Positions 11,641-52,582 of a stretch of DNA of 64,000 bases are shown here, in pieces. The stretch is taken from assembly GCA_946965045.2 (NCBI GenBank), contig OX337242.1, positions 2,294,001 to 2,358,000 on the forward strand. Direction: 5' to 3'. Positions within the stretch are counted from its first letter, which is position 1, and every line of letters begins with the position of its first letter. This DNA comes from Epithemia pelagica (lineage: Eukaryota; Protista; Bacillariophyta). Position numbers and translations under genes: made by a program. The notes under the pieces were generated by a model that was not told the DNA's origin, ran no database searches, and saw only the letters and a program-made list of their open reading frames with translations.

Positions 11641-12618
11641 ATGGATCGAATGATTTCAGAACTCGGTAGTGGTCGTCGTCGTTGCCTACGGCACATCATG
11701 AGGTGTCTCTTCCTGTTGCTGTTGTTGGTCGTGGTTCGTGGTTGTGACACAGCCCTCAAAACAGTCGTCGTCGTCCCTCCTTCCTCTTCCACTCCTCCAT
11801 CGGTCCCCTGGGGACTTGCTCCTGGCATGATTCTGTATGATCACGTGCGGGGTGGCCACCAACCACCACCACAACAAGAAAGCAACACTACGTTGTCCAC
11901 TACTGGTCCATCACCACCACAAACTCCAGCAGTACTAGAAGGTCACGACGACCAACCACCACAAGTGCTCCCTCGTATTCTTGGAGAAGAAATTCTCCAC
12001 AATCATTGGAGAAAATTGATCAATCGTCGCGTGCAACTTCCAACCACCACGCAACAGCAGATTGTTAATTTTGAACTCGTCTCGCAAGGAGATCACGGGG
12101 GGACTGTCTGCGATCAAGCCGTCCTGGTCTTTGTTTGGAATCAATCCACTCAAACGGCCGTCTTGATTCGAGAATACATGCCTTCGGTCCATGCCTTTCA
12201 ATTGGGTTTGGTGGCCGGCATGGTGGAACAAAAGCATGGTGTAGCTCCTAGTACCAACGACCCGTAAGCCGCCGCCGCCGTGGCTGCCCGAGACGAATTG
12301 GAAGAAGAAGCTCGTTTGGTGGGTGGCACGTGGATTGGTTTGTGTGCACCGACTGTGGTGGACAAGTACATGACCACACGTGTTACAGCCTACCTTGTGT
12401 TGAATCCGGAACCCGTGGCCAATCTAGACGAGGCCAAACCACGCGATGCGACCGAAGAGGGAGGCATGTTGCACGTGGTGCCCAATGTCACCGTGTCCCA
12501 ATTGAAGCGGGGGTTGGTCCAAGGACACTTTACCAGTTTGGCCGGATGGGCCATTCAATTGGCCTTGTCCAAACTGCAGGAACTGGGACTCGTCATGGTC
12601 GAGGACGACGAAAAATAG
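11641..12618 (+). pseudogene. Nudix hydrolase, the only 5'-complete copy, interrupted by a nonsense codon (TAA at 12265-12267)
   Basis: Signal-like MRCLFLLLLLVVVRG; LIREYMP; Nudix-box-like AGMVE...AARDELEEEARL. The other four copies read GAA at this codon. Confidence 0.85.
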
Positions 12619-12619
12619 A

Positions 12620-13600
12620 ACCAAGCAACGAGAGACATGCACTGGATACGACAATTCAGCAGCCATGCAACGCGAGGATCCCATGGTTACTGCGCACGCG
12701 CAATGTCGGAGGCAGGTCCGAGAAAACAGAAGCCATTTCACCAAACGTACTTCTGGACCCACGTTTCTGGTCTGCAGTTTGCAATCAATGGACATACAAA
12801 TAGCATAAAGACAATGGGGTTTTCATTATGGCTTGCTACTACGGACGACACAAGTCATAGCTCATAACGAAAACCAATCACACAAGTCTGAACTATATTA
12901 TCCAGGCGACGAGGCAACTGCAAGATCCAAATGATGATGGAGAGCACTTTTTTTCCGTCGGCGACAACAAATAGAGAACGAGAAACAGCATGTCGCACAT
13001 GCACCGGATATAATAAGTACAATCCAGCAGCCGAGCAACGCGAGCATCCCATGGTGACAGCGCAAGTCGGAGGCAGGTCCGGGAAACCATTTCCCCAAAC
13101 ACGAACCGGAACCACGTTTGTCTGCAGTTTCCAATCAATCTACCAGAGACATGCGCAGGGACAGTGTCCTGTGGGATAAACAGGTACAAATGGCTCCAAG
13201 AGACATTGTGGCTGTCATTATGGCTAGGGCAAATACGGACGACAAAAGTACTACCTAGCCCGAAACGAAAACCAATCACACAAGTCTGAACCATATCATC
13301 AAAGCAACGATGCCAATGCAAGATCCCCGGAAGCTGATAGAGAGCACTTCCTTCAGTCGGATTGAAAGTCATCGATTCACCATTGCGGGGAGACAAGTTT
13401 TATCTGCACATGGATATCCCTTTCGACAACACCGGGCGTTGTCGGAGGATACAGAAAATGTGGAAAGACAACTTTTTGGCATGCCGCCGGGCGCGATTGG
13501 ATAGTCGCGCTTCGTCATGGGTCGTGGTCTTGTTTCGTTTTGGTCGGTCGCGAGTGAGACCCGAACACTGCAGAGGTCACGGCACTCTCCATGCGACATG
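12620..13600 (-). pseudogene. Decayed Kelch-repeat gene remnant (copies at about 18263-19243, 35698-36678, 41341-42321, 46984-47964)
   Basis: Minus-strand fragments read FSDLPPTLRVRSNHGILALHGC*IVVSS and WFPGPASDLRCHHGMLALLGCWIVLIISG, resembling Kelch blades (compare TSRHSHGVVRVGSCLIVVGG at about 50.9 kb). Stops and frameshifts present; two diverged blocks of roughly 370 bp. Boundaries approximate. Confidence 0.5.
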
Positions 13601-13889
13601 AAAGTTTGTCACAGTAATCGACCCATTACTGACGTGTGAAGATTGGATTGGCTTATTGCAGTCGCCGTACTGTCCATTTGAAGTCGCTCCAAGATATGCG
13701 CGCGAGAAGATCTTAGAATGCAAAATCGTGACTACTCGAATCCAGCATACAGCGTTTCGTATTTTGTTTCGTTTGCTCTCAAAATTTCGAGGAGGAGGAG
13801 GGCGCCCCATTTCTGTCGTTTTATAAATCTGAGACGGTGAGCTTTTGGAAGGAGGGTAAGAGGTCTGACTTGACAGTTCAAGCTCGACC

Positions 13890-16800
13890 ATGAGTGAGGA
13901 GAGCTACTGTGAAAAAGATTGGGGCTTGGACTACAAATGCGATTATCCATTGCCCCGAAGTGCTTACAACCGGAGTGGTCCTGTATGCAATTCTCTTGCT
14001 CAGTATCTTTATGATCCAGCGAATTGTGACCCCGGATGGTGGTGTGGATGCTCCAGCACTATCGCTTCAGAGTGTGTGCCCTCCAACGACCGAAGCTTCA
14101 CCAAGTGGGGAGGACACTTCACGACAACGGACAGTGGAGGAAACGAGATCGTTTTGTATGGTCAGTTTAACGAGGGAGAAGGTGAATGTCCCTTGTCGTA
14201 CTACTGCCCAGGAAAAAGCAAGATTGATACCTGTGTGGATCTTTGTCCCCCCAAGTTTTACTGCCCGGATCCCGGCCAGGCCTTGGATTGCAGGGAAGAC
14301 TATTACTGCCCGATTGGAAGTTTTGAAGGAAAGAAATGCATCAATATGGAAACATGTGGTTCCACTGGACTTCGCCGCTTTGAAGTTGGTCCTGCCGTGT
14401 CTGTTATGATTTTCATTCTCATCGTGTCAGTTGCCTATCTCTTTCTCGGGCGATATCTGGTCGTACGCAATGCGCGCCGTCGTAAGGAGGCCATGATGAT
14501 TAAGCGCCAAATGACTGAAAGCGGAAAGCAGGTTGGTGGTGATGATGATGATGACGATGACCAAGAGGGCGAAGAACAGGCCAAAGAAGTTGAAGAGGGC
14601 GAAGAGATCGAAAGCCCTGCTCCGAAAAAGGAGAGGCGCCGCTCCACGTTATCGTCTCCCGATATGACGATTGACATCGAGTGTGAACGTCTCCGTTTGA
14701 CCATCCCCAAAGTGGGTACCATCATGCGTGGAGTCTCAGGGAAATTGGAACACGGGAAGTTGACTGCTATTATGGGACCCTCTGGTGCTGGTGAGTCCGC
14801 TTTGCATATTTCATCATGCAAATTGTTTTGTTGAAGCCCTAACTTTATCGTTCTTGCGTCAAGGTAAAACAACGTTCCTGTCTCTCATGTCGGGAAAAGT
14901 AGATCGCACGGGAGGAAAACTTCGTATTAACGGAGAGGAAGACGACCTCAGTGGTTTTAGGCGACTGATTGGCTTCGTTCCTCAAGAAGACATTGTAAGT
15001 CTCTTTTTTCGATAGAGTGGCTTCTTTTCATCGTTCCTCTGACAAAAGTGTTGTTTACGCTTCTCAATAGATGCTTCGTGAACTTACTGTTGAAGAGAAC
15101 ATTTACCACAGTGCCATGATGCGTCTTCCTGTTGAATGGAGCCATGAGAAGAAGAAGGAGCGTGTCGAAGAAATTCTTGAATCCCTGGAAATCGACCATG
15201 TGCGAGATACTGTAGTGGGTGATGAAAAGAAACGAGGAATCAGTGGAGGACAGCGAAAGCGTGTAAATATTGGCATGGAGTAAGTTTGTGAGAGTTTTGT
15301 TGGTAGGTCAGCCGTATACACCTTTTCCTTATTGCTCCCTGTTGTTGGTGATAACAGAATGGTGGTGCAGCCCAGTTTGCTTTGTTTGGACGAGTAAGTA
15401 CATATCAGGCCTGATTCAACTTTTCTGGCTATTTTTGTAAGATCAACCTTACCTCCTCATTCTTGCAGACCGACGAGTGGTCTTGACTCCACAACATCCT
15501 TCACGGTAGTGAACTCTTTGAAAGATATGGCAAGATCTGGTGCCAATGTTATCACAGTTCTCCATCAGCCCAAGTATGAGGTATGTTGCCACTGGGACAA
15601 CATTTTGCAACAGACCATTATGCTCTTACCATTCACAATGCATTCAGGTGTTTCAACTGTTCGACAATGTTCTGCTTTTGGGGCAGGGTGGTATGACCGT
15701 CTACTATGGGCCAACTTCTGGCATGGAGGATTACTTTGCGAAGCGTGGTTTCCTTTGTCCATCATTTTCGAATCCTGCTGATTTCTACATGGATGTCCTC
15801 TCCGGCATTATCCCGCATCCTGACAATGCGGACTGGCACAAAGAAGACCTTTTTGAAGAGTGGATGTGCGCCGACGAAAACCCAAACAAGGTGTCTCGTG
15901 AAGAGGCGAAGTCGACTATTGACGAGATTCGTAACGAAGACGCGGAAATAAACCTAAAGAACGAGGAAACTGACCGTCAAGAAGGCCGCTTTTTCATTGG
16001 ACGATTTTGTGCATTCTTGTGCAATGAGTTCAGTATGGTTTTTAAGCACATTTGGAGCAACGTCCGTCCTGACAAAACTGGTCGCAAGACTCCTGGAGCT
16101 TTATCACAAACCTATCTTTTGTTCATCCGTGCGAGTAGACAACGTCTTCGTTCTCCATTCGCCACGATTTTGAACATTTTTCTCATGTTGATAGCCGGTT
16201 CGGTTGTTACACTTTCGGCTGGTGAGGACATCAATTTCTACGCTGGTATTCCTAAGAACGTTCAGGAGGGCAACACCGGCCAAGAAGCTTACTTGCAGCA
16301 GAATGTTCAGCCAGTTGATATTGTTCCTGTTACCATGCTCACCGTTTATTTCTTTCTGCTGATGATTTCATGTCTTTCCGTGAATGTCTACGGCCCGGAA
16401 CGTACGGTATTCTTCCGAGATACGGCTGTGGGTCAGAGCGTGTTTTCGTACTGGGTTGCGAAAACCACTGATACCTTGATTTGGCTACCTATTTATACCT
16501 GCGCGTTTGTACTTTTGGGATATCATGGAGAGGCATGGTTGATTCAACCTTTGCGGAGCTACTGGGTTTTCCTCTTTCTCGATATTGTGGGATTCTACAG
16601 TTTTGGTATGCTTGCAAGTCTCTTGGTTGGACCCTCCAGTGCTGCTTTGCTTGCTCTCGTCTTTGGTGTTGTTGTTGTGCTCCAATTCTCATGTACTGTC
16701 TCTGCGTACGGAGACGCAGACTCAGGCCGTCAAACCTTTACGAATTTTTGGTTTGTTTTCTGGAGCACTCAAGGTCTGGCTTCGAAAGAATACGATCAGT

Positions 16801-17114
16801 ACACCTATGCCTTCAACGTGACTCGTTTGAATGACGAGACACCTGATAGGTACAACAATGAATTAGGTATCGGTATACAGACAGTTGGTGGTACGTTTGA
16901 AAATCAATTCGAGAACTCGTAAGGGATTCTTCTATGCATATGTGGATTCTAACGACACTATTTGCTGTTAATTTCTTCAGCCGGAGTTGGCAAGGGTTTT
17001 GACCTAGATTCAAGCTACCCGAGAAATGCTGCCTTATGTGCCTTGACCGCATTTGCCTGGTATATCATTGTTCTTTGGACACTGAAGACAAAGGATCACA
17101 GGAAGCATCGTTAG
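13890..17114 (+). CDS. ABCG (White-like) half-transporter with Cys-rich N-terminal domain, copy 1 (921 aa)
   Basis: Exons 13890-14790, 14864-14994, 15071-15279, 15358-15393, 15469-15580, 15648-16890, 16981-17114. All introns are GT-AG and the spliced length is 2766 nt. Splicing reconstructs Walker A GPSGAG|KTT, Q-loop GFVPQEDI, signature ISGGQRKRVNIG, Walker B LLCLDE|PTSGLDS and H-loop VLHQP; C-terminal TMD. Confidence 0.95.
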
Positions 17115-17512
17115 GAATGCGAATTCCAAGGAGATATTGAAAGTATTCAAGTAAATGTTGCATGTTGAGAGTTGCCATTGAATGATCGATTGATTGATCA
17201 TTGAAAATCAAAAAAAGAAAGTTGTGTGTCAGGTTGAAAAAGTGAGAGAGCAGTAAATATAACATGTTTTAGGAAATTGGCCTTCATGTCTACTCAGTTG
17301 TGAGTCAGTAGTAGGAAATTGGCCTTAAACTTGGTTCGTTTCCCGCTCTCTCCTAGCAGGAAGATCTCCTTAAAAAAGGAATAGCACGAAAGTATGCGGA
17401 CAACTTTTCAAGTCTTCATTGGTTCCATGATGTCTTGTTCCGTCGTGGCATCGCAAGAAGTTTTCTGTTTGTCGAACGATCGGTGAGAATTTCCATTTAG
17501 TTCGGCACAATT

Positions 17513-18261
17513 CACAACAAGAAAGCAACACTACGTTGTCCACTACTGGTCCATCACCACCACAAACTCCAGCAGTACTAGAAGGTCACGACGACCAACC
17601 ACCACAAGTGCTCCCTCGTATTCTTGGAGAAGAAATTCTCCACAATCATTGGAGAAAATTGATCAATCGTCGCGTGCAACTTCCAACCACCACGCAACAG
17701 CAGATTGTTAATTTTGAACTCGTCTCGCAAGGAGATCACGGGGGGACTATCTGCGATCAAGCCGTCCTGGTCTTTGTTTGGAATCAATCCACTCAAACGG
17801 CCGTCTTGATTCGAGAATACATGCCTTCGGTCCATGCCTTTCAATTGGGTTTGGTGGCCGGCATGGTGGAACAAAAGCATGGTGTAGCTCCTAGTACCAA
17901 CGACCCGGAAGCCGCCGCCGCCGTGGCTGCCCGAGACGAATTGGAAGAAGAAGCTCGTTTGGTGGGTGGCACGTGGATTGGTTTGTGTGCACCGACTGTG
18001 GTGGACAAGTACATGACCACACGTGTTACAGCCTACCTTGTGTTGAATCCGGAACCCGTGGCCAATCTAGACGAGGCCAAACCACGCGATGCGACCGAAG
18101 AGGGAGGCATGTTGCACGTGGTGCCCAATGTCACCGTGTCCCAATTGAAGCGGGGGTTGGTCCAAGGACACTTTACCAGTTTGGCCGGATGGGCCATTCA
18201 ATTGGCCTTGTCCAAACTGCAGGAACTGGGACTCGTCATGGTCGAGGACGACGAAAAATAG
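17513..18261 (+). pseudogene. 5'-truncated Nudix hydrolase copy 2
   Basis: Begins at the array junction and lacks the promoter and the first 76 codons; in-frame TGA at 17428 with no ATG before the junction. Nudix box intact. Confidence 0.85.
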
Positions 18262-19532
18262 AACCAAGCAACGAGAGACATGCACTGGATACGACAATTC
18301 AGCAGCCATGCAACGCGAGGATCCCATGGTTACTGCGCACGCGCAATGTCGGAGGCAGGTCCGAGAAAACAGAAGCCATTTCACCAAACGTACTTCTGGA
18401 CCCACGTTTCTGGTCTGCAGTTTGCAATCAATGGACATACAAATAGCATAAAGACAATGGGGTTTTCATTATGGCTTGCTACTACGGACGACACAAGTCA
18501 TAGCTCATAACGAAAACCAATCACACAAGCCTGAACTATATTATCCAGGCGACGAGGCAACTGCAAGATCCAAATGATGATGGAGAGCACTTTTTTTCCG
18601 TCGGCGACAACAAATAGAGAACGAGAAACAGCATGTCGCACATGCACCGGATATAATAAGTACAATCCAGCAGCCGAGCAACGCGAGCATCCCATGGTGA
18701 CAGCGCAAGTCGGAGGCAGGTCCGGGAAACCATTTCCCCAAACACGAACCGGAACCACGTTTGTCTGCAGTTTCCAATCAATCTACCAGAGACATGCGCA
18801 GGGACAGTGTCCTGTGGGATAAACAGGTACAAATGGCTCCAAGAGACATTGTGGCTGTCATTATGGCTAGGGCAAATACGGACGACAAAAGTACTACCTA
18901 GCCCGAAACGAAAACCAATCACACAAGTCTGAACCATATCATCAAAGCAACGATGCCAATGCAAGATCCCCGGAAGCTGATAGAGAGCACTTCCTTCAGT
19001 CGGATTGAAAGTCATCGATTCACCATTGCGGGGAGACAAGTTTTATCTGCACATGGATATCCCTTTCGACAACACCGGGCGTTGTCGGAGGATACAGAAA
19101 ATGTGGAAAGACAACTTTTTGGCATGCCGCCGGGCGCGATTGGATAGTCGCGCTTCGTCATGGGTCGTGGTCTTGTTTCGTTTTGGTCGGTCGCGAGTGA
19201 GACCCGAACACTGCAGAGGTCACGGCACTCTCCATGCGACATGAAAGTTTGTCACAGTAATCGACCCATTACTGACGTGTGAAGATTGGATTGGCTTATT
19301 GCAGTCGCCGTACTGTCCATTTGAAGTCGCTCCAAGATATGCGCGCGAGAAGATCTTAGAATGCAAAATCGTGACTACTCGAATCCAGCATACAGCGTTT
19401 CGTATTTTGTTTCGTTTGCTCTCAAAATTTCGAGGAGGAGGAGGGCGCCCCATTTCTGTCGTTTTATAAATCTGAGACGGTGAGCTTTTGGAAGGAGGGT
19501 AAGAGGTCTGACTTGACAGTTCAAGCTCGACC

Positions 19533-22757: not shown

Positions 22758-23534
22758 GAATGCGAATTCCAAGGAGATATTGAAAGTATTCAAGTAAATG
22801 TTGCATGTTGAGAGTTGCCATTGAATGATCGATTGATTGATCATTGAAAATCAAAAAAAGAAAGTTGTGTGTCAGGTTGAAAAAGTGAGAGAGCAGTAAA
22901 TATAACATGTTTTAGGAAATTGGCCTTCATGTCTACTCAGTTGTGAGTCAGTAGTAGGAAATTGGCCTTAAACTTGGTTCGTTTCCCGCTCTCTCCTAGC
23001 AGGAAGATCTCCTTAAAAAAGGAATAGCACGAAAGTATGCGGACAACTTTTCAAGTCTTCATTGGTTCCATGATGTCTTGTTCCGTCGTGGCATCGCAAG
23101 AAGTTTTCTGTTTGTCGAACGATCAGTGAAAATTTCCATTTAGTTCGGCACAATTCACAACAAGAAAGCAACACTACGTTGTCCACTACTGGTCCATCAC
23201 CACCACAAACTCCAGCAGTACTAGAAGGTCACGACGACCAACCACCACAAGTGCTCCCTCGTATTCTTGGAGAAGAAATTCTCCACAATCATTGGAGAAA
23301 ATTGAAATTGCCTTAAAAGCTGGTTCCGTCTCGGACGAGAGGCTGCCAAGAGATCGGCCAATAACCTGTCGAGTCCGAACGAGAAGTCTGGCTAGTAGTC
23401 ATAACACAACCTATCCTAGTTAATCATTGCCTTGAAGCAGATAGTGTTGACAGTCCATAGCTAAAACCCGAATTTCGACAATGGCTAATTTCACTAGTAT
23501 CTGTTACGACTATGGACTATGGATCTGTGGACGA

Positions 23535-24533
23535 CTAGGATGGATCTGTGTAGTCAACGGAGAAGAGTTTCTCTCCATTGTTGATTGCAAGTTGTGAGAC
23601 GATGAGGATGACACGGAAAGCACGGCCATGGGACGCAATGTCATGCCGCCATGTTTGACGCAGACAACCCCAGTCCTTGAAGCGCTTGTTGATGGTTTCT
23701 TGGCGGCTTCGGACTCGTTGTTGCATTTTTAGATTGTCTGCTGGATTGCTGAATCCAGCTGGGCACTTGACAAACTCAGGATGTTCGCCACGGTAGCCAT
23801 CATCAGCCTCGACCCTCTCATTGGGGTCGAGGTGTGACAGAAGACAGTCACGGAAAATTGTGATGTCGTTGTGGCTGCCAGCAACGTAGGGCCCATTCAA
23901 CCACACGACATCCCCTGTCAAAATACACAGCCCAATTTCATATCTGAGGGCACTTTTCTTGAATTTGTGGCTGTAGAACTTGCGTCCGTTCTCAGCCACC
24001 CGAAAGTCTGTCCCATCAACACTAATGAGGCAGTCATTCCCTTTGTCTAGCTTATAGCGGTTTTCCCACACTATCTGTAAAGCATTCTTGGAATGTTAGA
24101 CAATGAAACAAAAACAAACAAAAACGACTGTAGGGAGACTTACCACTTGACTTTCAAGGCGGACAATGGCATCAATGAAGAGCCATGTCCATTTCGAGAA
24201 CGTGTTCCTGTTGACACCACCAGCCAGAGTGCACAATACTCGTTCCTTTGCATACACCCGAAGGAACATGAGTGTCCAAAGAAGATGGGACATTGTTCCT
24301 GACACAGGCACCAAGTCGGACTCCACAAGAGCGCACCACAAATTCAAGCAAACAAGAATGCCACACCCAAAATACTGCCGAAACATCCGCTCCTCACTTT
24401 GGACGGTCCCCTTTTTACGGTGGAACAAAAGGGAATCGTTGCTCCAGATCAACCGGGCATGGTACAAAAAGTCTTCAGGGTTTGGGGCAGACCAGCGTTG
24501 CCGCTTGTTCCCCTCGGCATTCGAAGGAGCCAT
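23535..24533 (-). CDS. Harbinger-type DDE transposase (DDE_Tnp_4-like), 309 aa, 2 exons
   Basis: Exons 24533-24144 and 24074-23535 with a 69-bp GT-AG phase-0 intron. Motifs ISVDGTDF, YSHKFKKSALRYEIG, WLNGPY.AG..NDITIF, EADDGYRG, RSRQETINKRFK. Confidence 0.9.
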
Positions 24534-24900
24534 GATGGACAGTTTTTGTGAGAAATCTTGAGGACGAGACACGACTTTTAGGTAGAAATCGTACGATTCA
24601 CGCGAGCATCGATTTCTCCTTTCTACTTCTACTAGGGACTACAACTGTGGATTAGGGACCGTTCCCCACCGAAAAATTTGAACGGATCCATGTTGATTTC
24701 GTTGATAGTGTTACATAGGCAGATGACTATTCATTCGTGACCAATATAAGACCACTCTCTAGACCTGTCATATTGACTTAGCACGTACATGTCCATTACA
24801 GATTAGACAAACAACCGATTAAGCGTAAGAAAGCGGGCCGGTCAGTTGGATGGCACGTGTCCATAATTAATTTTGGTCCTGATGTCAGAAATCTGGTCCC

Positions 24901-25105
24901 GATCTCGGAATTCGGGTCGATCTCGGAATTCGGGCCAGATCTCGGAATTCGGGTCGATCTCGGAATTCGGGCCAGATCTCGGAATTCGGGTTTTTACTCT
25001 GAAATAAAGTATACTTTGGTCGGAAATCGGGTCGATCTCGGAATTCGGGCCAGATCTCGGAATTCGGGTCGATCTCGGAATTCGGGCCAGATCTCGGAAT
25101 TTGGG
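24901..25105. repeat. Minisatellite of alternating 18- and 19-bp units (GATCTCGGAATTCGGGTC / GATCTCGGAATTCGGGCCA)
   Basis: Five units at 24901-24990, an AT-rich gap of about 30 bp, one degenerate unit, then four units to 25105; lies between the two divergent transposon genes. Confidence 0.95.
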
Positions 25106-25300
25106 CTTTCCGTTGAACGGACCAATTATGTTTTTTCAGTTACCGCGCCTGCTTGCAATGCCGTGTGACTGCGAGAGGGAAAGTCAACTCGTTTCTGATT
25201 GCAAGCATGCCAGTCACACAAACACAACGGAGTGCTCAGAAGAAGAACTTCACGTCGAAGTCTCGCAATCTCTTGCCATCATAAATTTTGTCTCAATGAA

Positions 25301-26534
25301 ATGAAAGTGGTGCTACCGACCGACAGAGTACCTGCTTGGAGTAAGAAAGACGACGCCAAGCTCGCTGAACTCTTTCGCAAGGGTCCAAGCCACGGTGGAA
25401 TTTCAAGCAACGACACGTCCGTTAACACTGCGAAGAAAGTCCTTCTCACTCACTTTCCCGAGCGCTGCAAGCCCGACGTCCACAAGGCATACAAGAATTT
25501 TGGCCCTCTCTTTCGCGAAAAAGCCAGAGCCTGGAATATTAACCAGACTTTGACAGGGGCACGGAAAGCCCGAGCTGGTAAACGACGTAAGTGCAAGTGT
25601 CCATTGTTGAAAGTTGCTTCATGATTCTAACTACTTTCTTTCTTTTGTTATAGAATCAGCTGTTGCTGCTGAAGAGCAAAATCGCCTAGAGGTTAACAAC
25701 CTTGTCGAGGACGAAGCCGAGGAAGTTGAAGACGGAGACTACAGTGGGGCTGAGGAGGAGGAGGACATCTCCATTGATCTTGAAGAGGCGTCAGTTGAAT
25801 CTGGTGCAGCAGAAGAAGAGGTAGAAGACAACAACAGCGAAATCAACAGCTTCAGCATGGAGGAGGCGGTTCAAGCGTTCAAAAAGATGGGCCTCACCCC
25901 GGCCAAGACACCTAAGAAGGGTGGTGGTGGTGCTGCTTTCAAGGAACTGGTAGTAGCGGCTTCATATCCCTACTGTGCATCTAAGTTTGAGAGTTCTAAT
26001 ACTCTGTTCTGTTCTGTGGACATGTGTGTCCCAGGAGGGTCCACGAAGACCTACACTCCGGGGCTGGTGGATGATGGCATGGCAGTCCAGGTCGATTCTG
26101 TTGTGCCAAGCTATTTCTTCCAGAAAGGTCGACTGTTGGCGGCGCATCCTGATCTTGGGCAAGAGGACCATAGGGTCACAGAGTTCAAGCAACTCTGTGA
26201 CCGGGCCAAACAGGAACATGCAACGTATGAGGGTGGCAAACCAAAGTTTGTAGCGAAGCAGAAAATCAAGTTACCTTTCAAGTGTGTGAAGGAAGATATG
26301 CAATACGAACTACAAGCCTTCACTTCGAAGGACAAAGACTTCACCAAGGAGCACAGGGGTGCTGCCAAGATGTTTGTTTTCTCGATACTCCTCAAGGCCG
26401 CCAAGCAACCGGAACGAAAGCGTGCAAACCAAGGCACTGCACGGACCATCGCCCCTTACAATGATTCTGATGACTCCAATGTCCAAGATGTGGATGAGGA
26501 TGAGATGAGTCATGATGGTGACTACCAGAACTGA
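25301..26534 (+). CDS. Second transposon gene, putative Myb/SANT-like DNA-binding partner (about 388 aa)
   Basis: Exons about 25301-25586 and 25654-26534 (GTAAGT...TAG, phase 1; an alternative donor at 25578 has the same phase). N-terminal WSKKDDAKLAELF resembles Myb/SANT helix 1, followed by an acidic tract. PIF/Harbinger elements are known to carry such a second gene. Confidence 0.7.
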
Positions 26535-33748: not shown

Positions 33749-34068
33749 GGTGTTATTTGGTTGGTTCGATGTTTATTTAATGTGCGGTGTGATGTGGTTT
33801 ATTTAATGTGTGATGTGATGTGAACCCGGATGTACCACGTGTGCCACGTATGTACCACGTATGTAATACCCGGATGTGTGTTGTGATGTGCGACTCCTGG
33901 AAATTTCCGTTGATTTCGACAAATTTTCGCCGAGTTTCAACAAATTTTCGCCGAATTTTCGCGATTTGACGGGAATGTGTGGCGTGTTGTGCGACCAAGG
34001 GTACCCGGATGTGCGTTGAGTTTAAGTCTTGGAAAGGTTTTGAGAGGACGGGAGTTAACTATGAGTAA

Positions 34069-34848
34069 TTAAGCTTCGGTCTCTGAATCCTCACCCTCTT
34101 CCGAATGATCAGAGTCGCTTCCAGGCTCAGATGGGGCAGCACAAGCAACAGAAGAAGGGGTATCACCTTCAGCCAGGTGGTTCTCGACCTCGGTACGCAA
34201 AGGGTAGATAGTTGCACGATGGTCCTCGATGGTATGGACCTCGTGGATGTAGGCAACGTAGTTATCTAGGCGTACAACGTTAGGAGGCAGAGGGCAAGTC
34301 GTCGCGTTCACGACGTAGATGGTATTGTAGTATCCAGTTGGGCGCTCGAAGGTTAGGAAGCGGAGGTGGACAGTACGGATGGGGTTGCCCGAGAGGGCGG
34401 CAAAGATGAGGCGACGCCTCGGAGAGCGGTGAAGTTGGTCGTTCAGACGGTCAATGTCTTCTTGGTCGACGATGTGGGTCACCGATTGGAACTGGCGTTC
34501 GATCTGGGTCTCCCCACGGATGATCTCGGGATCGAAGGTCGAACAAGTTGGTTGGCGGAAGTACTTGATATGATCAGCAATCAACCGGGTGGTACGACGG
34601 GATCGAGAAGGGACGAGCCGACGAGGCGGACTCGGGGGCCGAAGCAACGGCGCAGGGATCGGAGCGTGAGGCTGGGTTGGAGTCTCGAATGGGTTGCTGT
34701 TGGAACTGTCGACGGAGATGTTGACCGATGTGTTGGCTGCCTTCGGCGTCGGCACCAGTTCCTGCTGCACCAGGGTATCGGGCTGCCCGGGATGCAGGTT
34801 GGCTCGATAGATCTGTCGTACAGGAGTGATAATCTCGTTAGTATCCAT
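34069..34848 (-). CDS. Additional retrotransposon ORF upstream of gag-pol (259 aa, unknown function)
   Basis: ATG 36 nt after the 5' LTR, same strand as gag-pol, TAA stop about 320 bp before the gag ATG. Pro/Arg-rich N-half, globular-looking middle, acidic tail. Confidence 0.6.
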   Translation of the reverse strand: MDTNEIITPVRQIYRANLHPGQPDTLVQQELVPTPKAANTSVNISVDSSNSNPFETPTQPHAPIPAPLLRPPSPPRRLVPSRSRRTTRLIADHIKYFRQPTCSTFDPEIIRGETQIERQFQSVTHIVDQEDIDRLNDQLHRSPRRRLIFAALSGNPIRTVHLRFLTFERPTGYYNTIYVVNATTCPLPPNVVRLDNYVAYIHEVHTIEDHRATIYPLRTEVENHLAEGDTPSSVACAAPSEPGSDSDHSEEGEDSETEA

Positions 34849-34873
34849 GAAACCACAAGGAAATAAGCTTTGA

Positions 34874-34884
34874 GACTGTTAATC
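34874..34884 (-). promoter_or_regulatory. Non-canonical primer-binding site GATTAACAGTC
   Basis: Starts immediately after the 5' LTR CA and has no TGG. Its complement GACTGTTAATC equals positions 30-40 (anticodon arm) of tRNA-Asn(GUU) as known from yeasts. Confidence 0.7.
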
Positions 34885-35667
34885 TGTTACAATTCTTTCT
34901 GAATCGTAGGGACATTGATGCTCGGTAGAGCAGACAATCAGGTAGGTCACCAACCGATACAAGCTTCTCAGGGTCAGAGAAGCAAGCAAGTCGAAGTCTA
35001 TCAGAAGGATAGTCGGGACACAAAAGAGGATGTGATAAATGGTGATATTGTTAGATTGTGTGTTGATTACTACGATAGGTCTACGTGAAATGTTCGGTCC
35101 TGCCAAGGGTCATGTATCATAGGTTCTTGGCGGCAACAGGTTTGGAATAGTTGGAGTTGATTCATGTGATGTATATGACATGTATATGTGGGCGGATAAC
35201 ATATACAGGGTCAACAGCTCTTGCTTTGGGTTGGCATAGTTGTTTTCATGGCGCGCAGCTTGTTGACAATTTGGAGATTGTGGGAATGGAAATATGGTCT
35301 CGCGTGATCGTGTGTCGTGCTTGGGATACTTAGACCGTTGGATCGGATAGATGCCGATAGCGCTCGGATGTCGCTTGGGCGCGCTCGATGATTTCGGGCG
35401 CGTACGCTTAGGGCGTTAGTACAGTGTCCGAGCAACGGCCAAATTTACGTCCGTTGTAATACCGCACGACCCAATTTAGTCTTGAGAGTGAGTTCGTCAA
35501 TCTATTCTCACTTTTCATGATTTGCGAAGAAATATAGGTCGATATAGCGCGAAGCTAGGAAACATAGCTCGAAGCTAGAGGGCATGATGCGATAGCACGA
35601 GGCTATGTGACATGGGGAATCGATGAGATGTAGAATCTAACCACCATAGACGGTGAGAATTCTAACA
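34885..35667 (-). repeat. 5' LTR (783 bp)
   Basis: Direct repeat of 27284-28066. Confidence 0.97.
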
Positions 35668-36967
35668 TCGTCATGGTCGAGGACGACGAAAAATAGAACC
35701 AAGCAACGAGAGACATGCACTGGATACGACAATTCAGCAGCCATGCAACGCGAGGATCCCATGGTTACTGCGCACGCGCAATGTCGGAGGCAGGTCCGAG
35801 AAAACAGAAGCCATTTCACCAAACGTACTTCTGGACCCACGTTTCTGGTCTGCAGTTTGCAATCAATGGACATACAAATAGCATAAAGACAATGGGGTTT
35901 TCATTATGGCTTGCTACTACGGACGACACAAGTCATAGCTCATAACGAAAACCAATCACACAAGCCTGAACTATATTATCCAGGCGACGAGGCAACTGCA
36001 AGATCCAAATGATGATGGAGAGCACTTTTTTTCCGTCGGCGACAACAAATAGAGAACGAGAAACAGCATGTCGCACATGCACCGGATATAATAAGTACAA
36101 TCCAGCAGCCGAGCAACGCGAGCATCCCATGGTGACAGCGCAAGTCGGAGGCAGGTCCGGGAAACCATTTCCCCAAACACGAACCGGAACCACGTTTGTC
36201 TGCAGTTTCCAATCAATCTACCAGAGACATGCGCAGGGACAGTGTCCTGTGGGATAAACAGGTACAAATGGCTCCAAGAGACATTGTGGCTGTCATTATG
36301 GCTAGGGCAAATACGGACGACAAAAGTACTACCTAGCCCGAAACGAAAACCAATCACACAAGTCTGAACCATATCATCAAAGCAACGATGCCAATGCAAG
36401 ATCCCCGGAAGCTGATAGAGAGCACTTCCTTCAGTCGGATTGAAAGTCATCGATTCACCATTGCGGGGAGACAAGTTTTATCTGCACATGGATATCCCTT
36501 TCGACAACACCGGGCGTTGTCGGAGGATACAGAAAATGTGGAAAGACAACTTTTTGGCATGCCGCCGGGCGCGATTGGATAGTCGCGCTTCGTCATGGGT
36601 CGTGGTCTTGTTTCGTTTTGGTCGGTCGCGAGTGAGACCCGAACACTGCAGAGGTCACGGCACTCTCCATGCGACATGAAAGTTTGTCACAGTAATCGAC
36701 CCATTACTGACGTGTGAAGATTGGATTGGCTTATTGCAGTCGCCGTACTGTCCATTTGAAGTCGCTCCAAGATATGCGCGCGAGAAGATCTTAGAATGCA
36801 AAATCGTGACTACTCGAATCCAGCATACAGCGTTTCGTATTTTGTTTCGTTTGCTCTCAAAATTTCGAGGAGGAGGAGGGCGCCCCATTTCTGTCGTTTT
36901 ATAAATCTGAGACGGTGAGCTTTTGGAAGGAGGGTAAGAGGTCTGACTTGACAGTTCAAGCTCGACC

Positions 36968-40192: not shown

Positions 40193-40590
40193 GAATGCGA
40201 ATTCCAAGGAGATATTGAAAGTATTCAAGTAAATGTTGCATGTTGAGAGTTGCCATTGAATGATCGATTGATTGATCATTGAAAATCAAAAAAAGAAAGT
40301 TGTGTGTCAGGTTGAAAAAGTGAGAGAGCAGTAAATATAACATGTTTTAGGAAATTGGCCTTCATGTCTACTCAGTTGTGAGTCAGTAGTAGGAAATTGG
40401 CCTTAAACTTGGTTCGTTTCCCGCTCTCTCCTAGCAGGAAGATCTCCTTAAAAAAGGAATAGCACGAAAGTATGCGGACAACTTTTCAAGTCTTCATTGG
40501 TTCCATGATGTCTTGTTCCGTCGTGGCATCGCAAGAAGTTTTCTGTTTGTCGAACGATCAGTGAAAATTTCCATTTAGTTCGGCACAATT

Positions 40591-41339
40591 CACAACAAGA
40601 AAGCAACACTACGTTGTCCACTACTGGTCCATCACCACCACAAACTCCAGCAGTACTAGAAGGTCACGACGACCAACCACCACAAGTGCTCCCTCGTATT
40701 CTTGGAGAAGAAATTCTCCACAATCATTGGAGAAAATTGATCAATCGTCGCGTGCAACTTCCAACCACCACGCAACAGCAGATTGTTAATTTTGAACTCG
40801 TCTCGCAAGGAGATCACGGGGGGACTGTCTGCGATCAAGCCGTCCTGGTCTTTGTTTGGAATCAATCCACTCAAACGGCCGTCTTGATTCGAGAATACAT
40901 GCCTTCGGTCCATGCCTTTCAATTGGGTTTGGTGGCCGGCATGGTGGAACAAAAGCATGGTGTAGCTCCTAGTACCAACGACCCGGAAGCCGCCGCCGCC
41001 GTGGCTGCCCGAGACGAATTGGAAGAAGAAGCTCGTTTGGTGGGTGGCACGTGGATTGGTTTGTGTGCACCGACTGTGGTGGACAAGTACATGACCACAC
41101 GTGTTACAGCCTACCTTGTGTTGAATCCGGAACCCGTGGCCAATCTAGACGAGGCCAAACCACGCGATGCGACCGAAGAGGGAGGCATGTTGCACGTGGT
41201 GCCCAATGTCACCGTGTCCCAATTGAAGCGGGGGTTGGTCCAAGGACACTTTACCAGTTTGGCCGGATGGGCCATTCAATTGGCCTTGTCCAAACTGCAG
41301 GAACTGGGACTCGTCATGGTCGAGGACGACGAAAAATAG
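40591..41339 (+). pseudogene. 5'-truncated Nudix copy 4
   Basis: Same junction as copy 2; frame intact to TAG. Confidence 0.85.
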
Positions 41340-42610
41340 AACCAAGCAACGAGAGACATGCACTGGATACGACAATTCAGCAGCCATGCAACGCGAGGAT
41401 CCCATGGTTACTGCGCACGCGCAATGTCGGAGGCAGGTCCGAGAAAACAGAAGCCATTTCACCAAACGTACTTCTGGACCCACGTTTCTGGTCTGCAGTT
41501 TGCAATCAATGGACATACAAATAGCATAAAGACAATGGGGTTTTCATTATGGCTTGCTACTACGGACGACACAAGTCATAGCTCATAACGAAAACCAATC
41601 ACACAAGCCTGAACTATATTATCCAGGCGACGAGGCAACTGCAAGATCCAAATGATGATGGGGAGCACTTTTTTTCCGTCGGCGACAACAAATAGAGAAC
41701 GAGAAACAGCATGTCGCACATGCACCGGATATAATAAGTACAATCCAGCAGCCGAGCAACGCGAGCATCCCATGGTGACAGCGCAAGTCGGAGGCAGGTC
41801 CGGGAAACCATTTCCCCAAACACGAACCGGAACCACGTTTGTCTGCAGTTTCCAATCAATCTACCAGAGACATGCGCAGGGACAGTGTCCTGTGGGATAA
41901 ACAGGTACAAATGGCTCCAAGAGACATTGTGGCTGTCATTATGGCTAGGGCAAATACGGACGACAAAAGTACTACCTAGCCCGAAACGAAAACCAATCAC
42001 ACAAGTCTGAACCATATCATCAAAGCAACGATGCCAATGCAAGATCCCCGGAAGCTGATAGAGAGCACTTCCTTCAGTCGGATTGAAAGTCATCGATTCA
42101 CCATTGCGGGGAGACAAGTTTTATCTGCACATGGATATCCCTTTCGACAACACCGGGCGTTGTCGGAGGATACAGAAAATGTGGAAAGACAACTTTTTGG
42201 CATGCCGCCGGGCGCGATTGGATAGTCGCGCTTCGTCATGGGTCGTGGTCTTGTTTCGTTTTGGTCGGTCGCGAGTGAGACCCGAACACTGCAGAGGTCA
42301 CGGCACTCTCCATGCGACATGAAAGTTTGTCACAGTAATCGACCCATTACTGACGTGTGAAGATTGGATTGGCTTATTGCAGTCGCCGTACTGTCCATTT
42401 GAAGTCGCTCCAAGATATGCGCGCGAGAAGATCTTAGAATGCAAAATCGTGACTACTCGAATCCAGCATACAGCGTTTCGTATTTTGTTTCGTTTGCTCT
42501 CAAAATTTCGAGGAGGAGGAGGGCGCCCCATTTCTGTCGTTTTATAAATCTGAGACGGTGAGCTTTTGGAAGGAGGGTAAGAGGTCTGACTTGACAGTTC
42601 AAGCTCGACC

Positions 42611-45600: not shown

Positions 45601-45835
45601 GACAGTTGGTTGTACGTTTGAAAATCAATTCGAGAACTCGTAAGGGATTCTTCTATGCATATGTGGATTCTAACGACACTATTTGCTGTTAATTTCTTCA
45701 GCCGGAGTTGGCAAGGGTTTTGACCTAGATTCAAGCTACCCGAGAAATGCTGCCTTATGTGCCTTGACCGCATTTGCCTGGTATATCATTGTTCTTTGGA
45801 CACTGAAGACAAAGGATCACAGGAAGCATCGTTAG
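42611..45835 (+). CDS. ABCG half-transporter, copy 4
   Basis: Copy 1 +28721; same exons; private G>T at the last base of exon 6 (45611), with the donor GT retained. Confidence 0.93.
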
Positions 45836-46233
45836 GAATGCGAATTCCAAGGAGATATTGAAAGTATTCAAGTAAATGTTGCATGTTGAGAGTTGCCATT
45901 GAATGATCGATTGATTGATCATTGAAAATCAAAAAAAGAAAGTTGTGTGTCAGGTTGAAAAAGTGAGAGAGCAGTAAATATAACATGTTTTAGGAAATTG
46001 GCCTTCATGTCTACTCAGTTGTGAGTCAGTAGTAGGAAATTGGCCTTAAACTTGGTTCGTTTCCCGCTCTCTCCTAGCAGGAAGATCTCCTTAAAAAAGG
46101 AATAGCACGAAAGTATGCGGACAACTTTTCAAGTCTTCATTGGTTCCATGATGTCTTGTTCCGTCGTGGCATCGCAAGAAGTTTTCTGTTTGTCGAACGA
46201 TCAGTGAAAATTTCCATTTAGTTCGGCACAATT

Positions 46234-46982
46234 CACAACAAGAAAGCAACACTACGTTGTCCACTACTGGTCCATCACCACCACAAACTCCAGCAGTACT
46301 AGAAGGTCACGACGACCAACCACCACAAGTGCTCCCTCGTATTCTTGGAGAAGAAATTCTCCACAATCATTGGAGAAAATTGATCAATCGTCGCGTGCAA
46401 CTTCCAACCACCACGCAACAGCAGATTGTTAATTTTGAACTCGTCTCGCAAGGAGATCACGGGGGGACTATCTGCGATCAAGCCGTCCTGGTCTTTGTTT
46501 GGAATCAATCCACTCAAACGGCCGTCTTGATTCGAGAATACATGCCTTCGGTCCATGCCTTTCAATTGGGTTTGGTGGCCGGCATGGTGGAACAAAAGCA
46601 TGGTGTAGCTCCTAGTACCAACGACCCGGAAGCCGCCGCCGCCGTGGCTGCCCGAGACGAATTGGAAGAAGAAGCTCGTTTGGTGGGTGTCACGTGGATT
46701 GGTTTGTGTGCACCGACTGTGGTGGACAAGTACATGACCACACGTGTTACAGCCTACCTTGTGTTGAATCCGGAACCCGTGGCCAATCTAGACGAGGCCA
46801 AACCACGCGATGCGACCGAAGAGGGAGGCATGTTGCACGTGGTGCCCAATGTCACCGTGTCCCAATTGAAGCGGGGGTTGGTCCAAGGACACTTTACCAG
46901 TTTGGCCGGATGGGCCATTCAATTGGCCTTGTCCAAACTGCAGGAACTGGGACTCGTCATGGTCGAGGACGACGAAAAATAG
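46234..46982 (+). pseudogene. 5'-truncated Nudix copy 5
   Basis: Same junction; lies in the final partial unit. Confidence 0.85.
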
Positions 46983-48662
46983 AACCAAGCAACGAGAGAC
47001 ATGCACTGGATACGACAATTCAGCAGCCATGCAACGCGAGGATCCCATGGTTACTGCGCACGCGCAATGTCGGAGGCAGGTCCGAGAAAACAGAAGCCAT
47101 TTCACCAAACGTACTTCTGGACCCACGTTTCTGGTCTGCAGTTTGCAATCAATGGACATACAAATAGCATAAAGACAATGGGGTTTTCATTATGGCTTGC
47201 TACTACGGACGACACAAGTCATAGCTCATAACGAAAACCAATCACACAAGCCTGAACTATATTATCCAGGCGACGAGGCAACTGCAAGATCCAAATGATG
47301 ATGGAGAGCACTTTTTTTCCGTCGGCGACAACAAATAGAGAACGAGAAACAGCATGTCGCACATGCACCGGATATAATAAGTACAATCCAGCAGCCGAGC
47401 AACGCGAGCATCCCATGGTGACAGCGCAAGTCGGAGGCAGGTCCGGGAAACCATTTCCCCAAACACGAACCGGAACCACGTTTGTCTGCAGTTTCCAATC
47501 AATCTACCAGAGACATGCGCAGGGACAGTGTCCTGTGGGATAAACAGGTACAAATGGCTCCAAGAGACATTGTGGCTGTCATTATGGCTAGGGCAAATAC
47601 GGACGACAAAAGTACTACCTAGCCCGAAACGAAAACCAATCACACAAGTCTGAACCATATCATCAAAGCAACGATGCCAATGCAAGATCCCCGGAAGCTG
47701 ATAGAGAGCACTTCCTTCAGTCGGATTGAAAGTCATCGATTCACCATTGCGGGGAGACAAGTTTTATCTGCACATGGATATCCCTTTCGACAACACCGGG
47801 CGTTGTCGGAGGATACAGAAAATGTGGAAAGACAACTTTTTGGCATGCCGCCGGGCGCGATTGGATAGTCGCGCTTCGTCATGGGTCGTGGTCTTGTTTC
47901 GTTTTGGTCGGTCGCGAGTGAGACCCGAACACTGCAGAGGTCACGGCACTCTCCATGCGACATGAAAGTTTGTCACAGTAATCGACCCATTACTGACGTG
48001 TGAAGATTGGATTGGCTTATTGCAGTCGCCGTACTGTCCATTTGAAGTCGCTCCAAGATATGCGCGCGAGAAGATCTTAGAATGCAAAATCGTGACTACT
48101 CGAATCCAGCATACAGAAAAAAAGGACCCCCTCTCTCTCTCTTCGTCTCTCCCCGAGACAGACTCCCACATTTTTGTCTAACAAAAAAAAGGCGACGTCT
48201 ATCATACAATGGACTTGAAGTATCATGCTTGACTCTTGGGACAACCAACAATCGTCCCATCCATCCTTCGATTAGATACGAAACGGGTTGTTGATTCAAC
48301 AGCCGTCGCAGCCAAAGTGCTTTTCTGTAACAGCACTGACTGAGAAATTGGAGTTTCTGTTTTGACGAATCAAGCACGCACATCCCGTTTGCGTTTGCTA
48401 CGTTTGAGAGTGAAGAAAAGCCAAACACACCCGAACGTTAAATCACTGCTTGCCATCACGATAGTCACATCTATTTACAAAACCAAGTATAGAGACCTCG
48501 GACTCTACCTCAGCGATTGACACACCAACTCTCCCCCAGACCTGTGAACTTTCTCCTCTCTCCATTGATTCTCATTGAACGAAACCTTATCACAGAATGA
48601 AGACTTTGGGTGTGACTCCGAAACAAGTTGGAGAGGACGACACACTTTTATTGTCGTCCGCC

Positions 48663-52526: not shown

Positions 52527-52582
52527 GCCACGTTGGGTTGGGTCTTTGAACTTGGCCACGTTGGGTTGGGTCTTTGAACTTG
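52527..52582 (+). repeat. 28-bp perfect tandem duplication
   Basis: GCCACGTTGGGTTGGGTCTTTGAACTTG at 52527 and 52555. Confidence 0.95.

Follow-up and report, generated by a model that had tools for sequence, protein, structure and literature searches.

A tandem array carrying four ABCG genes

The window, the whole 64,000-nucleotide stretch of Epithemia pelagica DNA analysed here, contains a tandem array built from two segments, N with part of a Nudix-like gene and A with an ABCG gene (Table 1). Self-BLAST and repeat finding agreed on a head-to-tail arrangement with a period of exactly 5,643 bp, no indels between units and pairwise unit identities of 99.78-99.93%. The array comprises 4.33 units, that is, four full units and a fifth N segment, and terminates within the unit, at unit position 1883. 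Its repeat DNA amounts to 24,455 bp, to which transposon insertions add 11.8 kb. Only a handful of single-nucleotide differences between copies had been noted, and this was borne out by 18 variant columns per 5,643 bp, with unit pairs differing at 4-13 sites. Every unit has private variants, and the sharing of variants among units is mosaic. The original prediction placed four copies on an exact period; the 5,643-bp length and the lack of indels agree with this, but two transposons in unit 3 break the period. The spacing of 17,435 bp between ABCG copies 2 and 3 arises because unit 3 holds a DDE transposon and an 8.4-kb Copia element.

Table 1. Positions of the array, its genes and neighbouring features in the window
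Feature	Position	Strand	Evidence or remarks
Nudix-like gene, only copy with native 5' end	11641-12618	+	copy-specific TAA at 12265-12267
Whole array, (N-A)x4-N	11870-48116	+	self-BLAST, repeat families, register alignment
N segment, unit 1, 1,883 bp	11870-13752	+	Nudix-like codons 77-326 and 1.13 kb of spacer; native to the locus
N segments 2-5	17513-19395, 23156-36830 (interrupted), 40591-42473, 46234-48116		self-BLAST, register alignment
A segment, unit 1, 3,760 bp, imported	13753-17512	+	ABCG gene with 137 bp upstream and 398 bp downstream
ABCG copy 1, 921 aa	13890-17114	+	sequence read, model check, Pfam
ABCG copy 1 exons	13890-14790, 14864-14994, 15071-15279, 15358-15393, 15469-15580, 15648-16890, 16981-17114	+	
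ABCG copy 2, intact, 921 aa	19533-22757	+	Y189F, D224V and S781G relative to copy 1
ABCG copy 3, intact, 921 aa	36968-40192	+	changes of copy 2 and E210V
ABCG copy 4, intact, 921 aa	42611-45835	+	changes of copy 2 and A878S
DDE transposon in N3, 3,398 bp	23306-26703	-	terminal inverted repeats of ~30 bp, TSD ATTGA, PF01609-type transposase ORFs
Copia-type LTR retrotransposon in N3, 8.4 kb	27284-35667	-	TSD TCGTC
Separate imported block: 435-aa ORF and Kelch gene	48131-51921	.	92-99% copy of a contig C6 unit that recurs at intervals of about 16 kb
Kelch-repeat gene, single copy, outside the repeat unit	50512-51961	-	only Kelch gene, also delimited as 50512-51627; 2.4 kb past the array

All four ABCG copies have seven exons, six GT-AG introns and an open frame of 921 codons, confirming the intact frames and splice sites noted earlier and supporting the view that an intact ABCG gene has genuinely been amplified in tandem. 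The earlier gene model probably lacked the seventh exon. The A878S change of copy 4 is a G>T at the final base of exon 6, splice donor position -1. In the spliced model, the nucleotide-binding domain (NBD) motifs are GPSGAGKT at amino acid 296 (Walker A), SGGQ at 402 (signature) and LDEPT at 424 (Walker B). Pfam matched PF19055 (ABC2_membrane_7, E 5e-31), with ABC_tran matching exons 2 and 3, and relatives in the family carry PF01061 and PF00005. The domain order is reverse, with the NBD motifs (amino acids 296-424) preceding the membrane helices (amino acids 633-915). A PDB profile search with the protein matched exclusively ABCG/PDR chains. As a proxy for the window's protein we used an AlphaFold model of the relative P0003 (57% identical, pLDDT 63), for which the top 50 PDB matches were only ABCG2, G5/G8, G1, G25 and G16, with a probability of 1.0 and a TM of about 0.42 against PDB ABCG chains. 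Together, these data point to an ABCG-type half-transporter, its fold predicted by way of P0003. The protein resembles human ABCG2, ABCG1 and ABCG5/G8 and plant ABCG25 and ABCG16 in its NBD-then-TMD order, its Walker A, signature and Walker B motifs and its ABC2-type membrane domain. It differs from the solved half-transporters in adding an N-terminal region of about 190 amino acids, with 16 cysteines and its own transmembrane (TM) helix, for which no Pfam, PDB or atlas match was found. The TMD is too divergent for sequence alignment with solved structures. In the 60.5-Mb assembly, this subfamily has only five members, the four array copies and a 922-amino-acid paralogue.

The Nudix-like sequence had been described as co-amplified and broken, and all five copies are indeed non-functional: N1 has the TAA, N2-N5 are without the first 76 codons, and N3 is additionally split by the two transposons. 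An intact 325-amino-acid form (P0109) is present on another contig. Searches with the sequence gave no direct Pfam or PDB match; the label 'Nudix' rests on homologues of 36-48% identity that carry PF00293 or Nudix names. ABCG is the sole intact gene within the repeat unit, which fits with its being what matters there.

Both transposons in unit 3 are young and were inserted after the amplification. The DDE family comprises at least seven near-identical full copies as well as MITE-like derivatives. The LTRs of the other element, of about 785 bp (27282-28066 and 34883-35667), are identical, and its polyprotein is intact (1,895 amino acids, 28061-33748), with RVT_2 (1e-24) at amino acids 1365-1584 and a weak rve match at amino acids 899-952. 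The integrase thus lies upstream of the RVT_2 reverse transcriptase, as in Ty1/Copia LTR retrotransposons. At least 14 copies of this element, 99-100% identical, occur elsewhere in the genome.

A Kelch sequence had also been thought to be broken and co-amplified. Comparison with a 98%-identical source on contig C6 shows that a 1-bp indel near 51603 splits its frame, but the gene is present once, in a separate imported block, and comparison of the unit with its flanks by tblastx and blastn found no Kelch sequence in the repeat unit. The insertion site of the block is 14 bp away from the N-to-A breakpoint, and its joint shows about 12 bp of microhomology.

Origin of the repeat unit

We found a paralogue of the A segment alone at C18:1575960-1579690, on the minus strand; it is 96.5% identical to A, inverted and 720 kb distant on the same chromosome. 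The homology ends 25 and 10 bp inside the A boundaries of the unit, spanning 13778-17502 in unit 1. Between these points and the N segments lie junction fillers of 25 bp (13753-13777) and 10 bp (17503-17512) that are identical in every unit, and the 25-bp filler at the N-to-A joint has exactly four occurrences, one in each unit. Neither filler had a match in the window or at the paralogue locus, and no microhomology was visible at either joint. The paralogue encodes an ABCG protein of 922 amino acids, and the only indel across the 2.8 kb of coding sequence is in frame. N flanks every A on both sides, and at either end the outer edge of the array consists of native sequence. The right end is not a breakpoint, because a paralogous locus (L003) runs from the N tail directly into the stretch located past the last N, the N tail and AAAAAAAGGACCCC being contiguous there as native sequence. 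Sequence comparison thus indicates that the amplified ABCG gene is a diverged daughter of the paralogue 720 kb away and that the unit combines local N with imported A.

We propose that the array arose in five steps. The 3.76-kb ABCG segment was copied, inverted, from 720 kb away into the spacer behind the Nudix-like gene. It came to lie between two 1.88-kb copies of N, giving N-A-N with the 25-bp and 10-bp fillers at the new joints; a template switch of the MMBIR/FoSTeS type may have produced this structure, through fork collapse at the N end, copying of A and re-entry 1.9 kb upstream. Unequal homologous recombination between N or whole-unit repeats would then have expanded the locus to (N-A)x4-N and would keep the copies alike. 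Substitutions accumulated in the daughter gene, most of them changing an amino acid and the greater part arising on the array's own branch, while the frame stayed open in every copy. Two active transposons inserted subsequently in unit 3, within its defunct Nudix fragment.

Replication template switching (MMBIR/FoSTeS) generates duplications with templated insertions at the joint. The array resembles such duplications in that a local segment is duplicated around a stretch from a distant inverted site and in its short untemplated or filler joints. It differs in that microhomology at its two joints is absent or masked by the fillers, and in a 3.5% divergence from the putative template that such switching leaves without explanation. 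Whereas A differs from the paralogue by 3.5%, the units differ from each other by merely 0.1-0.2%. This leaves two options: the import and the amplification took place at different times, or A was in truth donated by a different allele. In the first case, a one-step origin of N-A-N needs later homogenisation of the N copies.

Age of the array and amino-acid change

The array appears to be evolutionarily young yet older than the culture, and its sequence relatives on other contigs suggest that it is not private to one haplotype. The diatom mutation rate is about 5e-10 per site per generation, and at this rate the 4-13 differences per 5.6 kb place the amplification far beyond decades of culture. 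These differences, and the insertion of two transposons after the amplification, argue against the original prediction that it was very recent. At least four distinct ABCG exon-1 variants and two exon-6 variants, with fixed amino-acid differences from the window's copies (I58N and positions 691, 695 and 752-757), occur on a second public contig, which is 228 kb long and probably represents the other haplotype. It also has an intact Nudix-like first copy. With its own variants and fixed substitutions, this contig argues against the suggestion that the array is strain- or culture-specific. A further contig, of 188 kb, matches the window's exact variant set, including three exon-1 variants, three exon-6 variants and a transposon-chimeric ORF.

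Comparison of the array ABCG with the paralogue revealed an excess of amino-acid change. The pairwise test gave Sd 11 and Nd 95 (pN/pS 2.38, Fisher p 0.0026), and a permutation that kept the mutation spectrum yielded 79 +/- 4.3 expected non-synonymous changes, compared with 92 observed (P about 0.001). Nonsense changes numbered zero, compared with 4.5 expected (P 0.010). By pairwise pN/pS and by permutation, the non-synonymous rate on the ABCG duplicate is significantly above the synonymous rate, as positive (diversifying) selection would have it. When exon 6 changes were polarised with three outgroups, 27 were array-derived and 7 paralogue-derived. The changes cluster (chi-square p 6e-16) in the N-terminal Cys-rich ectodomain, TM1b, extracellular loop 1 (EL1), TM2 and TM5a, compartments that were grouped after the data had been seen and drawn from the pLDDT-63 model of a relative rather than of the array protein. 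Non-coding divergence between array and paralogue is uneven (4/459 in introns, 21/500 in flanks), which hints at gene conversion between the two and makes the neutral yardstick uncertain; against the flanks (4.2%), a pN of 4.4% is about neutral. The coding variants within the array, five non-synonymous and three synonymous, are compatible with neutrality, and an MK-style test on the array ABCG was not significant (p 0.058).

Interpretation of the amplification

The account that we favour, and judge slightly better than an even bet, is that of a young array, built stepwise, that encodes a functionally shifted ABCG half-transporter in a new upstream context and is kept in multiple copies because more of it is useful. 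Selection for dosage of this diverged, putative exporter is plausible. As a gene amplification the array is of an ordinary kind, though it is older and has more structure than the original prediction held. The bare finding is unsurprising, because fast adaptation is well known to proceed through tandem amplification of efflux-type genes. Tandem duplications are reported to underlie azole resistance in Candida tropicalis (PMC10724272), and copy-number variation has been reviewed (PMC11703754). Tandem amplifications of ABC efflux or drug-target genes as dosage adaptation share with the array their head-to-tail units, an intact transporter-type gene, near-identical copies and passengers truncated at the boundaries. 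By contrast, the array comes without a known drug or stress context, is older than the culture, lies on two haplotype-like contigs and amplifies a diverged daughter in place of the original gene.

All joints of the array are legible in the sequence, making it a clean natural example of a repeat unit composed of local DNA and an imported gene, and the amino-acid excess of its ABCG can be measured in defined parts of the fold. With its different fixed changes, the second array makes it possible to test directly between concerted evolution and parallel amplification. We found no paper on the substrates exported or excluded by diatom ABCG pumps with ectodomains; should expression and variation in copy number be demonstrated, the locus would become a tractable case for what these pumps export or exclude. 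A wider reading, which we offer tentatively as a possibility, is that these genes belong to a diatom-wide, undescribed ABCG subfamily with a Cys-rich ectodomain. One of its lineages would have been re-seeded at a fragile site, changed adaptively on its outward surface and in the helices of the translocation path, and been homogenised as a multi-copy array that both homologous chromosomes now keep. Dosage alone would then not have shaped the array; conflict, or a compound newly exported or excluded, would have done so.

It is also conceivable, although we find it rather doubtful, that the array is a neutral by-product of a rearrangement hotspot, persisting by drift with copies that are intact because they are young, and with an excess that reflects relaxed constraint together with chance or gene conversion. 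The locus looks fragile: two foreign gene blocks were inserted at most 14 bp apart, a paralogous segment lies 111 kb away, and one unit took up two transposons. The 5:3 ratio of variants within the array and the near equality of flank divergence and pN fit this explanation as well. In benthic pennate diatoms, gene families grow to a large extent through tandem arrays, some of them species-specific, and tandem duplicates are very common and less constrained than dispersed ones (Seminavis robusta, PMC7335047); 'ABC transporter' and 'ABCG' have zero occurrences in that genome paper, and the ABCG unit differs from the Seminavis arrays in combining local with imported DNA at defined joints. However, relaxed constraint predicts a ratio of non-synonymous to synonymous change near 1, not the 2.4 observed, and drift does not readily account for the missing nonsense changes, the single in-frame indel, the highly non-random positions of the changes or the presence of at least eight intact ABCG copies across two contigs.

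We consider it unlikely that the transporter is exposed at the cell surface with its outer face evolving in a conflict, for instance with a virus, parasite or bacterial toxin, so that copy number and diversity were selected rather than dosage alone. The substitutions do concentrate in the predicted exoplasmic ectodomain, EL1, EL2 and adjoining helices, and differences between the arrays and variants of the second array fall at the same places (amino acids 25, 26, 44, 58, 691, 695 and 752-757). Yet copies within one array are near-identical, leaving little standing diversity, the changes in TM2 and TM5a fit a change of substrate equally well, and the ABCG topology is itself a prediction.

A very recent dosage adaptation, specific to the strain or culture as was originally thought possible and dating from its time in the laboratory, would suit the 99.8-99.9% identity of the units and the identical Copia LTRs, but is highly improbable given pairwise differences orders of magnitude above the culture expectation at the above rate, the mosaic sharing of variants among units and a second array of at least four copies with different fixed amino acids. 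Assemblers are notoriously misled by near-identical repeats such as these of 5.6 kb, but a one- or two-copy locus over-expanded by the assembler is scarcely credible either: each unit has private variants; the two unique insertions in unit 3 have clean target duplications and, as anchors, leave repeat stretches of just 11.4 and 12.4 kb that a single long read can span; the 188-kb contig, possibly built from the same reads, repeats the variant set and the chimeric ORF; and the 228-kb contig carries four distinct exon-1 variants of its own.

Structure and origin of the ABCG array

Repeat finding and self-BLAST gave a period of exactly 5,643 bp across the whole array, with no indels, in agreement with the original prediction of a four-unit repeat carrying intact ABCG genes that differ by few SNPs. 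All four genes are open and have GT-AG introns. The unit count required revision: the array comprises 4.33 units, that is, four full units followed by a further 1,883 bp repeating the start of the unit, and unit 3 is interrupted twice by transposons. Units are 99.78–99.93% identical by self-BLAST; aligned in register, they have 18 variant columns. Units 3 and 4 are the closest pair, with 4 differences, and units 1 and 2 the most distant, with 13. The array is very probably real in the genome. The window corresponds to G000:C18:2294001-2358000, in the genome of a pennate-diatom-type eukaryote; named homologues come from Amphora, Cylindrotheca and Nitzschia. No RNA gene and no other recognisable gene was found in the unit by Rfam, tRNA and Pfam scans.

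Positions of the array and related features (window coordinates unless a contig is named)
Feature	Position	Details
Tandem array	11870-48116	
ABCG copy 1, exons	13890-14790, 14864-14994, 15071-15279, 15358-15393, 15469-15580, 15648-16890, 16981-17114	sequence reading and script check
Extra N-terminal region, copy 1	13890-14460	aa 1-190
DDE transposon, unit 3	23306-26703	3,398 bp; terminal inverted repeats of ~30 bp; duplicated ATTGA
Tandem repeat within DDE element	24901-25106	19/37-bp repeat
Copia element, unit 3	27284-35667	8.4 kb; identical LTRs of ~785 bp; intact 1,895-aa polyprotein; duplicated TCGTC
ORF and Kelch block	48131-51921	
435-aa ORF	48762-50069 (+)	sole Pfam signal a sub-threshold PI31_Prot_N match
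Lipoxygenase-like gene	51922-53499	92-99% identical to its counterpart in L003
Inverted ABCG paralogue	C18:1575960-1579690	720 kb away; 96.5% identical; intact, 922 aa
L003, downstream segment	G000:C18:2467756-2471047	111 kb downstream
C6 array (L025-L027, L032)	G000:C6:3357624-3487746	source copies of the ORF and Kelch block

When one unit was searched against the whole assembly (60.5 Mb in 23 contigs), the paralogue matched unit positions 1909–5633 only. The unit is therefore a composite of a local segment, N (unit positions 1–1883), and an imported segment, A (1884–5643), which begins 137 bp upstream of the ABCG start codon. Homology to the paralogue stops short of the two joints, by 25 bp and 10 bp, and the short fillers left there are identical across all units; neither has a match with up to 4 mismatches in the window or at the paralogue locus. 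The left edge of the array falls within a continuous ORF, and in L003 the N tail runs directly into AAAAAAAGGACCCC and then on to the sequence that starts here at 51922. The outer edges are thus native, and only the N-to-A and A-to-N joints are novel. Within L003, the N tail (91% identical) is followed directly by the region upstream of a lipoxygenase-like gene copy, and identity along the segment is mosaic.

The resulting order, (N-A)x4-N, cannot be obtained by plain tandem duplication of one segment, so a founding N-A-N arrangement is needed. In the simplest origin, N would have been duplicated with a templated insertion at the joint through a replication template switch, and unequal recombination between the repeats could then have expanded the array. 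Segment A diverges from the paralogue by 3.5%, and the units diverge among themselves by 0.1–0.2%. Either the two events were far apart in time and the units were later homogenised, or another allele served as the template.

A second import lies just 3′ of the array. This block, which holds an ORF and a Kelch gene, is a 92–99% copy of a unit that recurs on contig C6 at intervals of about 16 kb. It was inserted with approximately 12 bp of microhomology, and its breakpoint is only 14 bp (window 48117–48130) from the N-to-A breakpoint of the ABCG import (13752/13753). The paired breakpoints adjoin an A7 run and a CT-rich tract, and may mark a fragile site or be the trace of one complex event. Kelch sequence had been described as broken and co-amplified. 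The Kelch gene is indeed broken, since comparison with its C6 source shows a 1-bp indel near 51603, but it was not co-amplified: comparing the unit with both flanks and both insertions (blastn, word size 11, and tblastx) gave no match. At least seven units, 92% identical (98% over the Kelch part), make up the C6 array, whose period is approximately 16 kb; in the block, the Kelch gene is accompanied by the 435-aa ORF.

The ABCG gene and its product

The ABCG gene has 7 exons encoding 921 aa, and a script check showed that all six introns are GT-AG. Splicing the exons makes the Walker A, signature and Walker B motifs whole again. We rejected a 6-exon, 887-aa model because it stopped at an in-frame stop within intron 6 and relatives show a conserved last transmembrane helix; comparison with these relatives indicates that exon 7 encodes this helix. 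The gene model behind the original prediction probably also ended at the intron-6 stop. One of the exonic variant sites among the copies is the final base of exon 6, where copy 4 carries T in place of G (window 45611, that is, 16890 + 28721), giving A878S. This T weakens the context of the donor site, so that copy 4 may be spliced less well.

Pfam and database searches were run exon by exon; frames were checked and substitutions counted on the joined translation. The family assignment comes from PF19055 (5e-31) and from ABC_tran on small exons, and the PDB matches of the family profile were ABCG/PDR chains only. The AlphaFold model (pLDDT 63) of a relative with 57% identity best matched ABCG2, G5/G8, G1, G25 and G16. 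When the transmembrane domain was compared with solved ABCG structures by sequence, only the nucleotide-binding domain (NBD) end aligned, and residue-level mapping onto ABCG2 was not achieved.

The protein carries an extra N-terminal region of approximately 190 aa, with 16 cysteines, its own hydrophobic or transmembrane helix and then a basic cluster. It has no signal peptide and no match in Pfam, the PDB or the protein atlas, in which the best score (0.81) was at chance level. The region is kept in the relatives found, nearly all of them unnamed; the one named close match is from the diatom Amphora, and a chytrid protein is only weakly similar.

Amino-acid change between the array and its paralogue

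The amplified gene is a diverged daughter of the distant paralogue. Copy 1 and the paralogue differ at 106 coding positions, approximately 95 of them non-synonymous and 11 synonymous (pN 4.4%, pS 1.85%, ratio 2.38; Fisher p 0.0026). In a permutation that held the base-change spectrum, 79 ± 4.3 non-synonymous changes were expected and 92 were observed (P about 0.001); the same simulation expected 4.5 nonsense changes, and there were none (P 0.010). Gene conversion from a third paralogue was considered as a source of the substitution clusters and rejected for this assembly, in which the subfamily has five members, namely, the four array copies and the paralogue; with the subfamily limited to these genes, a hidden third donor is unlikely. 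Some gene conversion is suggested by the introns, which are far less diverged (4/459) than the flanks (21/500) and leave the neutral rate uncertain.

We polarised the differences with three outgroup proteins (72%, 57% and 51% identical). Exon 1 was too variable for good polarisation; in exon 6, 27 differences were derived in the array and 7 in the paralogue, many at positions invariant among the outgroups. Placed on the helices of the medium-quality model of the 57%-identical relative, the differences were very uneven over compartments that were grouped after inspection of the data (chi-square heterogeneity p 6e-16). Together, these comparisons provide evidence for adaptive change on the predicted outer face of the pump and in TM2 and TM5a. 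Within the array, the eight exonic variant sites among the four copies (5 non-synonymous, 3 synonymous, all frames open) look neutral; examples of variants specific to a copy are 14455, 14560, 15253 and 16599.

Amino-acid differences between the array protein and the paralogue by predicted compartment
Compartment	Differences/residues
N-terminal ectodomain	19/168
TM1b	5/21
Extracellular loop 1 (EL1)	14/35
TM2	6/19
TM5a	6/20
Cytosolic linker, NBD and elbow	16/445
IL1 and TM3	1/47
TM6 and tail	0/32

A second array, the Nudix-like fragments and transposons

Two other public contigs, of 188 kb and 228 kb, were compared through their ORF-level protein products. The 188-kb contig matches the window exactly in its exon-1 and exon-6 variants, three of each, and also encodes the 208-aa nonsense-truncated Nudix ORF and the 211-aa ORF running from the DDE element through the Nudix-like fragment of unit 3 into the Copia LTR. 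It thus represents the same haplotype, and the same reads may underlie both assemblies. The 228-kb contig has four different exon-1 variants (A25T, Y26N, Y26N+A44V and baseline) and two exon-6 variants; its first Nudix-like copy is intact (325 aa), and three further distinct copies are truncated. These products indicate a second array, with no fewer than four units, from either the other haplotype or another strain. The window copies are fixed for I58, T695 and H756; the known variants of the second array have N58, M753 and R757 throughout and A or S at 752. These array-specific residues reflect either homogenisation within each array or separate expansions.

Neither the very recent date nor the strain-specific origin suggested for the amplification is supported. 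The second array, taken with the 4–13 differences between units and the two transposons inserted later, rules out an origin during laboratory culture. As a reading of sequence data, an adaptation of gene dosage would be reasonable. The type of event, tandem gene amplification, is already well known, and tandem arrays are one of the main ways in which gene families grow in pennate diatoms (PMC7335047); no paper on diatom ABCG arrays turned up in our literature search. What lifts this case above the routine is a composite architecture that is readable in full, the evidence for adaptive change at predicted outer-face and TM2/TM5a positions, and a second array with different fixed residues.

The Nudix-like gene begins at 11641, upstream of the array; its first 76 codons lie outside the unit, whose boundary at 11870 falls at codon 77. 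As had been proposed, it is both broken and co-amplified: copy 1 retains the 5′ end and has a private TAA at 12265, copies 2–5 are truncated, and copy 3 also holds both transposons. The ORF has no direct Pfam or PDB match, and the label Nudix is a putative one taken only from homologues bearing PF00293.

Both insertions lie within the Nudix-like fragment and neither within the ABCG gene, and their empty sites are visible in the uninterrupted units. Both families have been active recently in this genome, which contains at least 7 near-identical copies of the DDE family along with MITE-like derivatives, and no fewer than 14 Copia copies of 99–100% identity. The DDE element has PF01609-type ORFs and makes a true 5-bp target duplication, with four copies (the window, L017, L018 and L019) at ATTGA-like targets (ATTGA, ATTGA, ATTGA/ATTAA and ACTGA/ACTAG). 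Its MITE-like derivatives, of approximately 700 bp, are assembled from element positions 1–184, 1506–1854 and 3222–3398.
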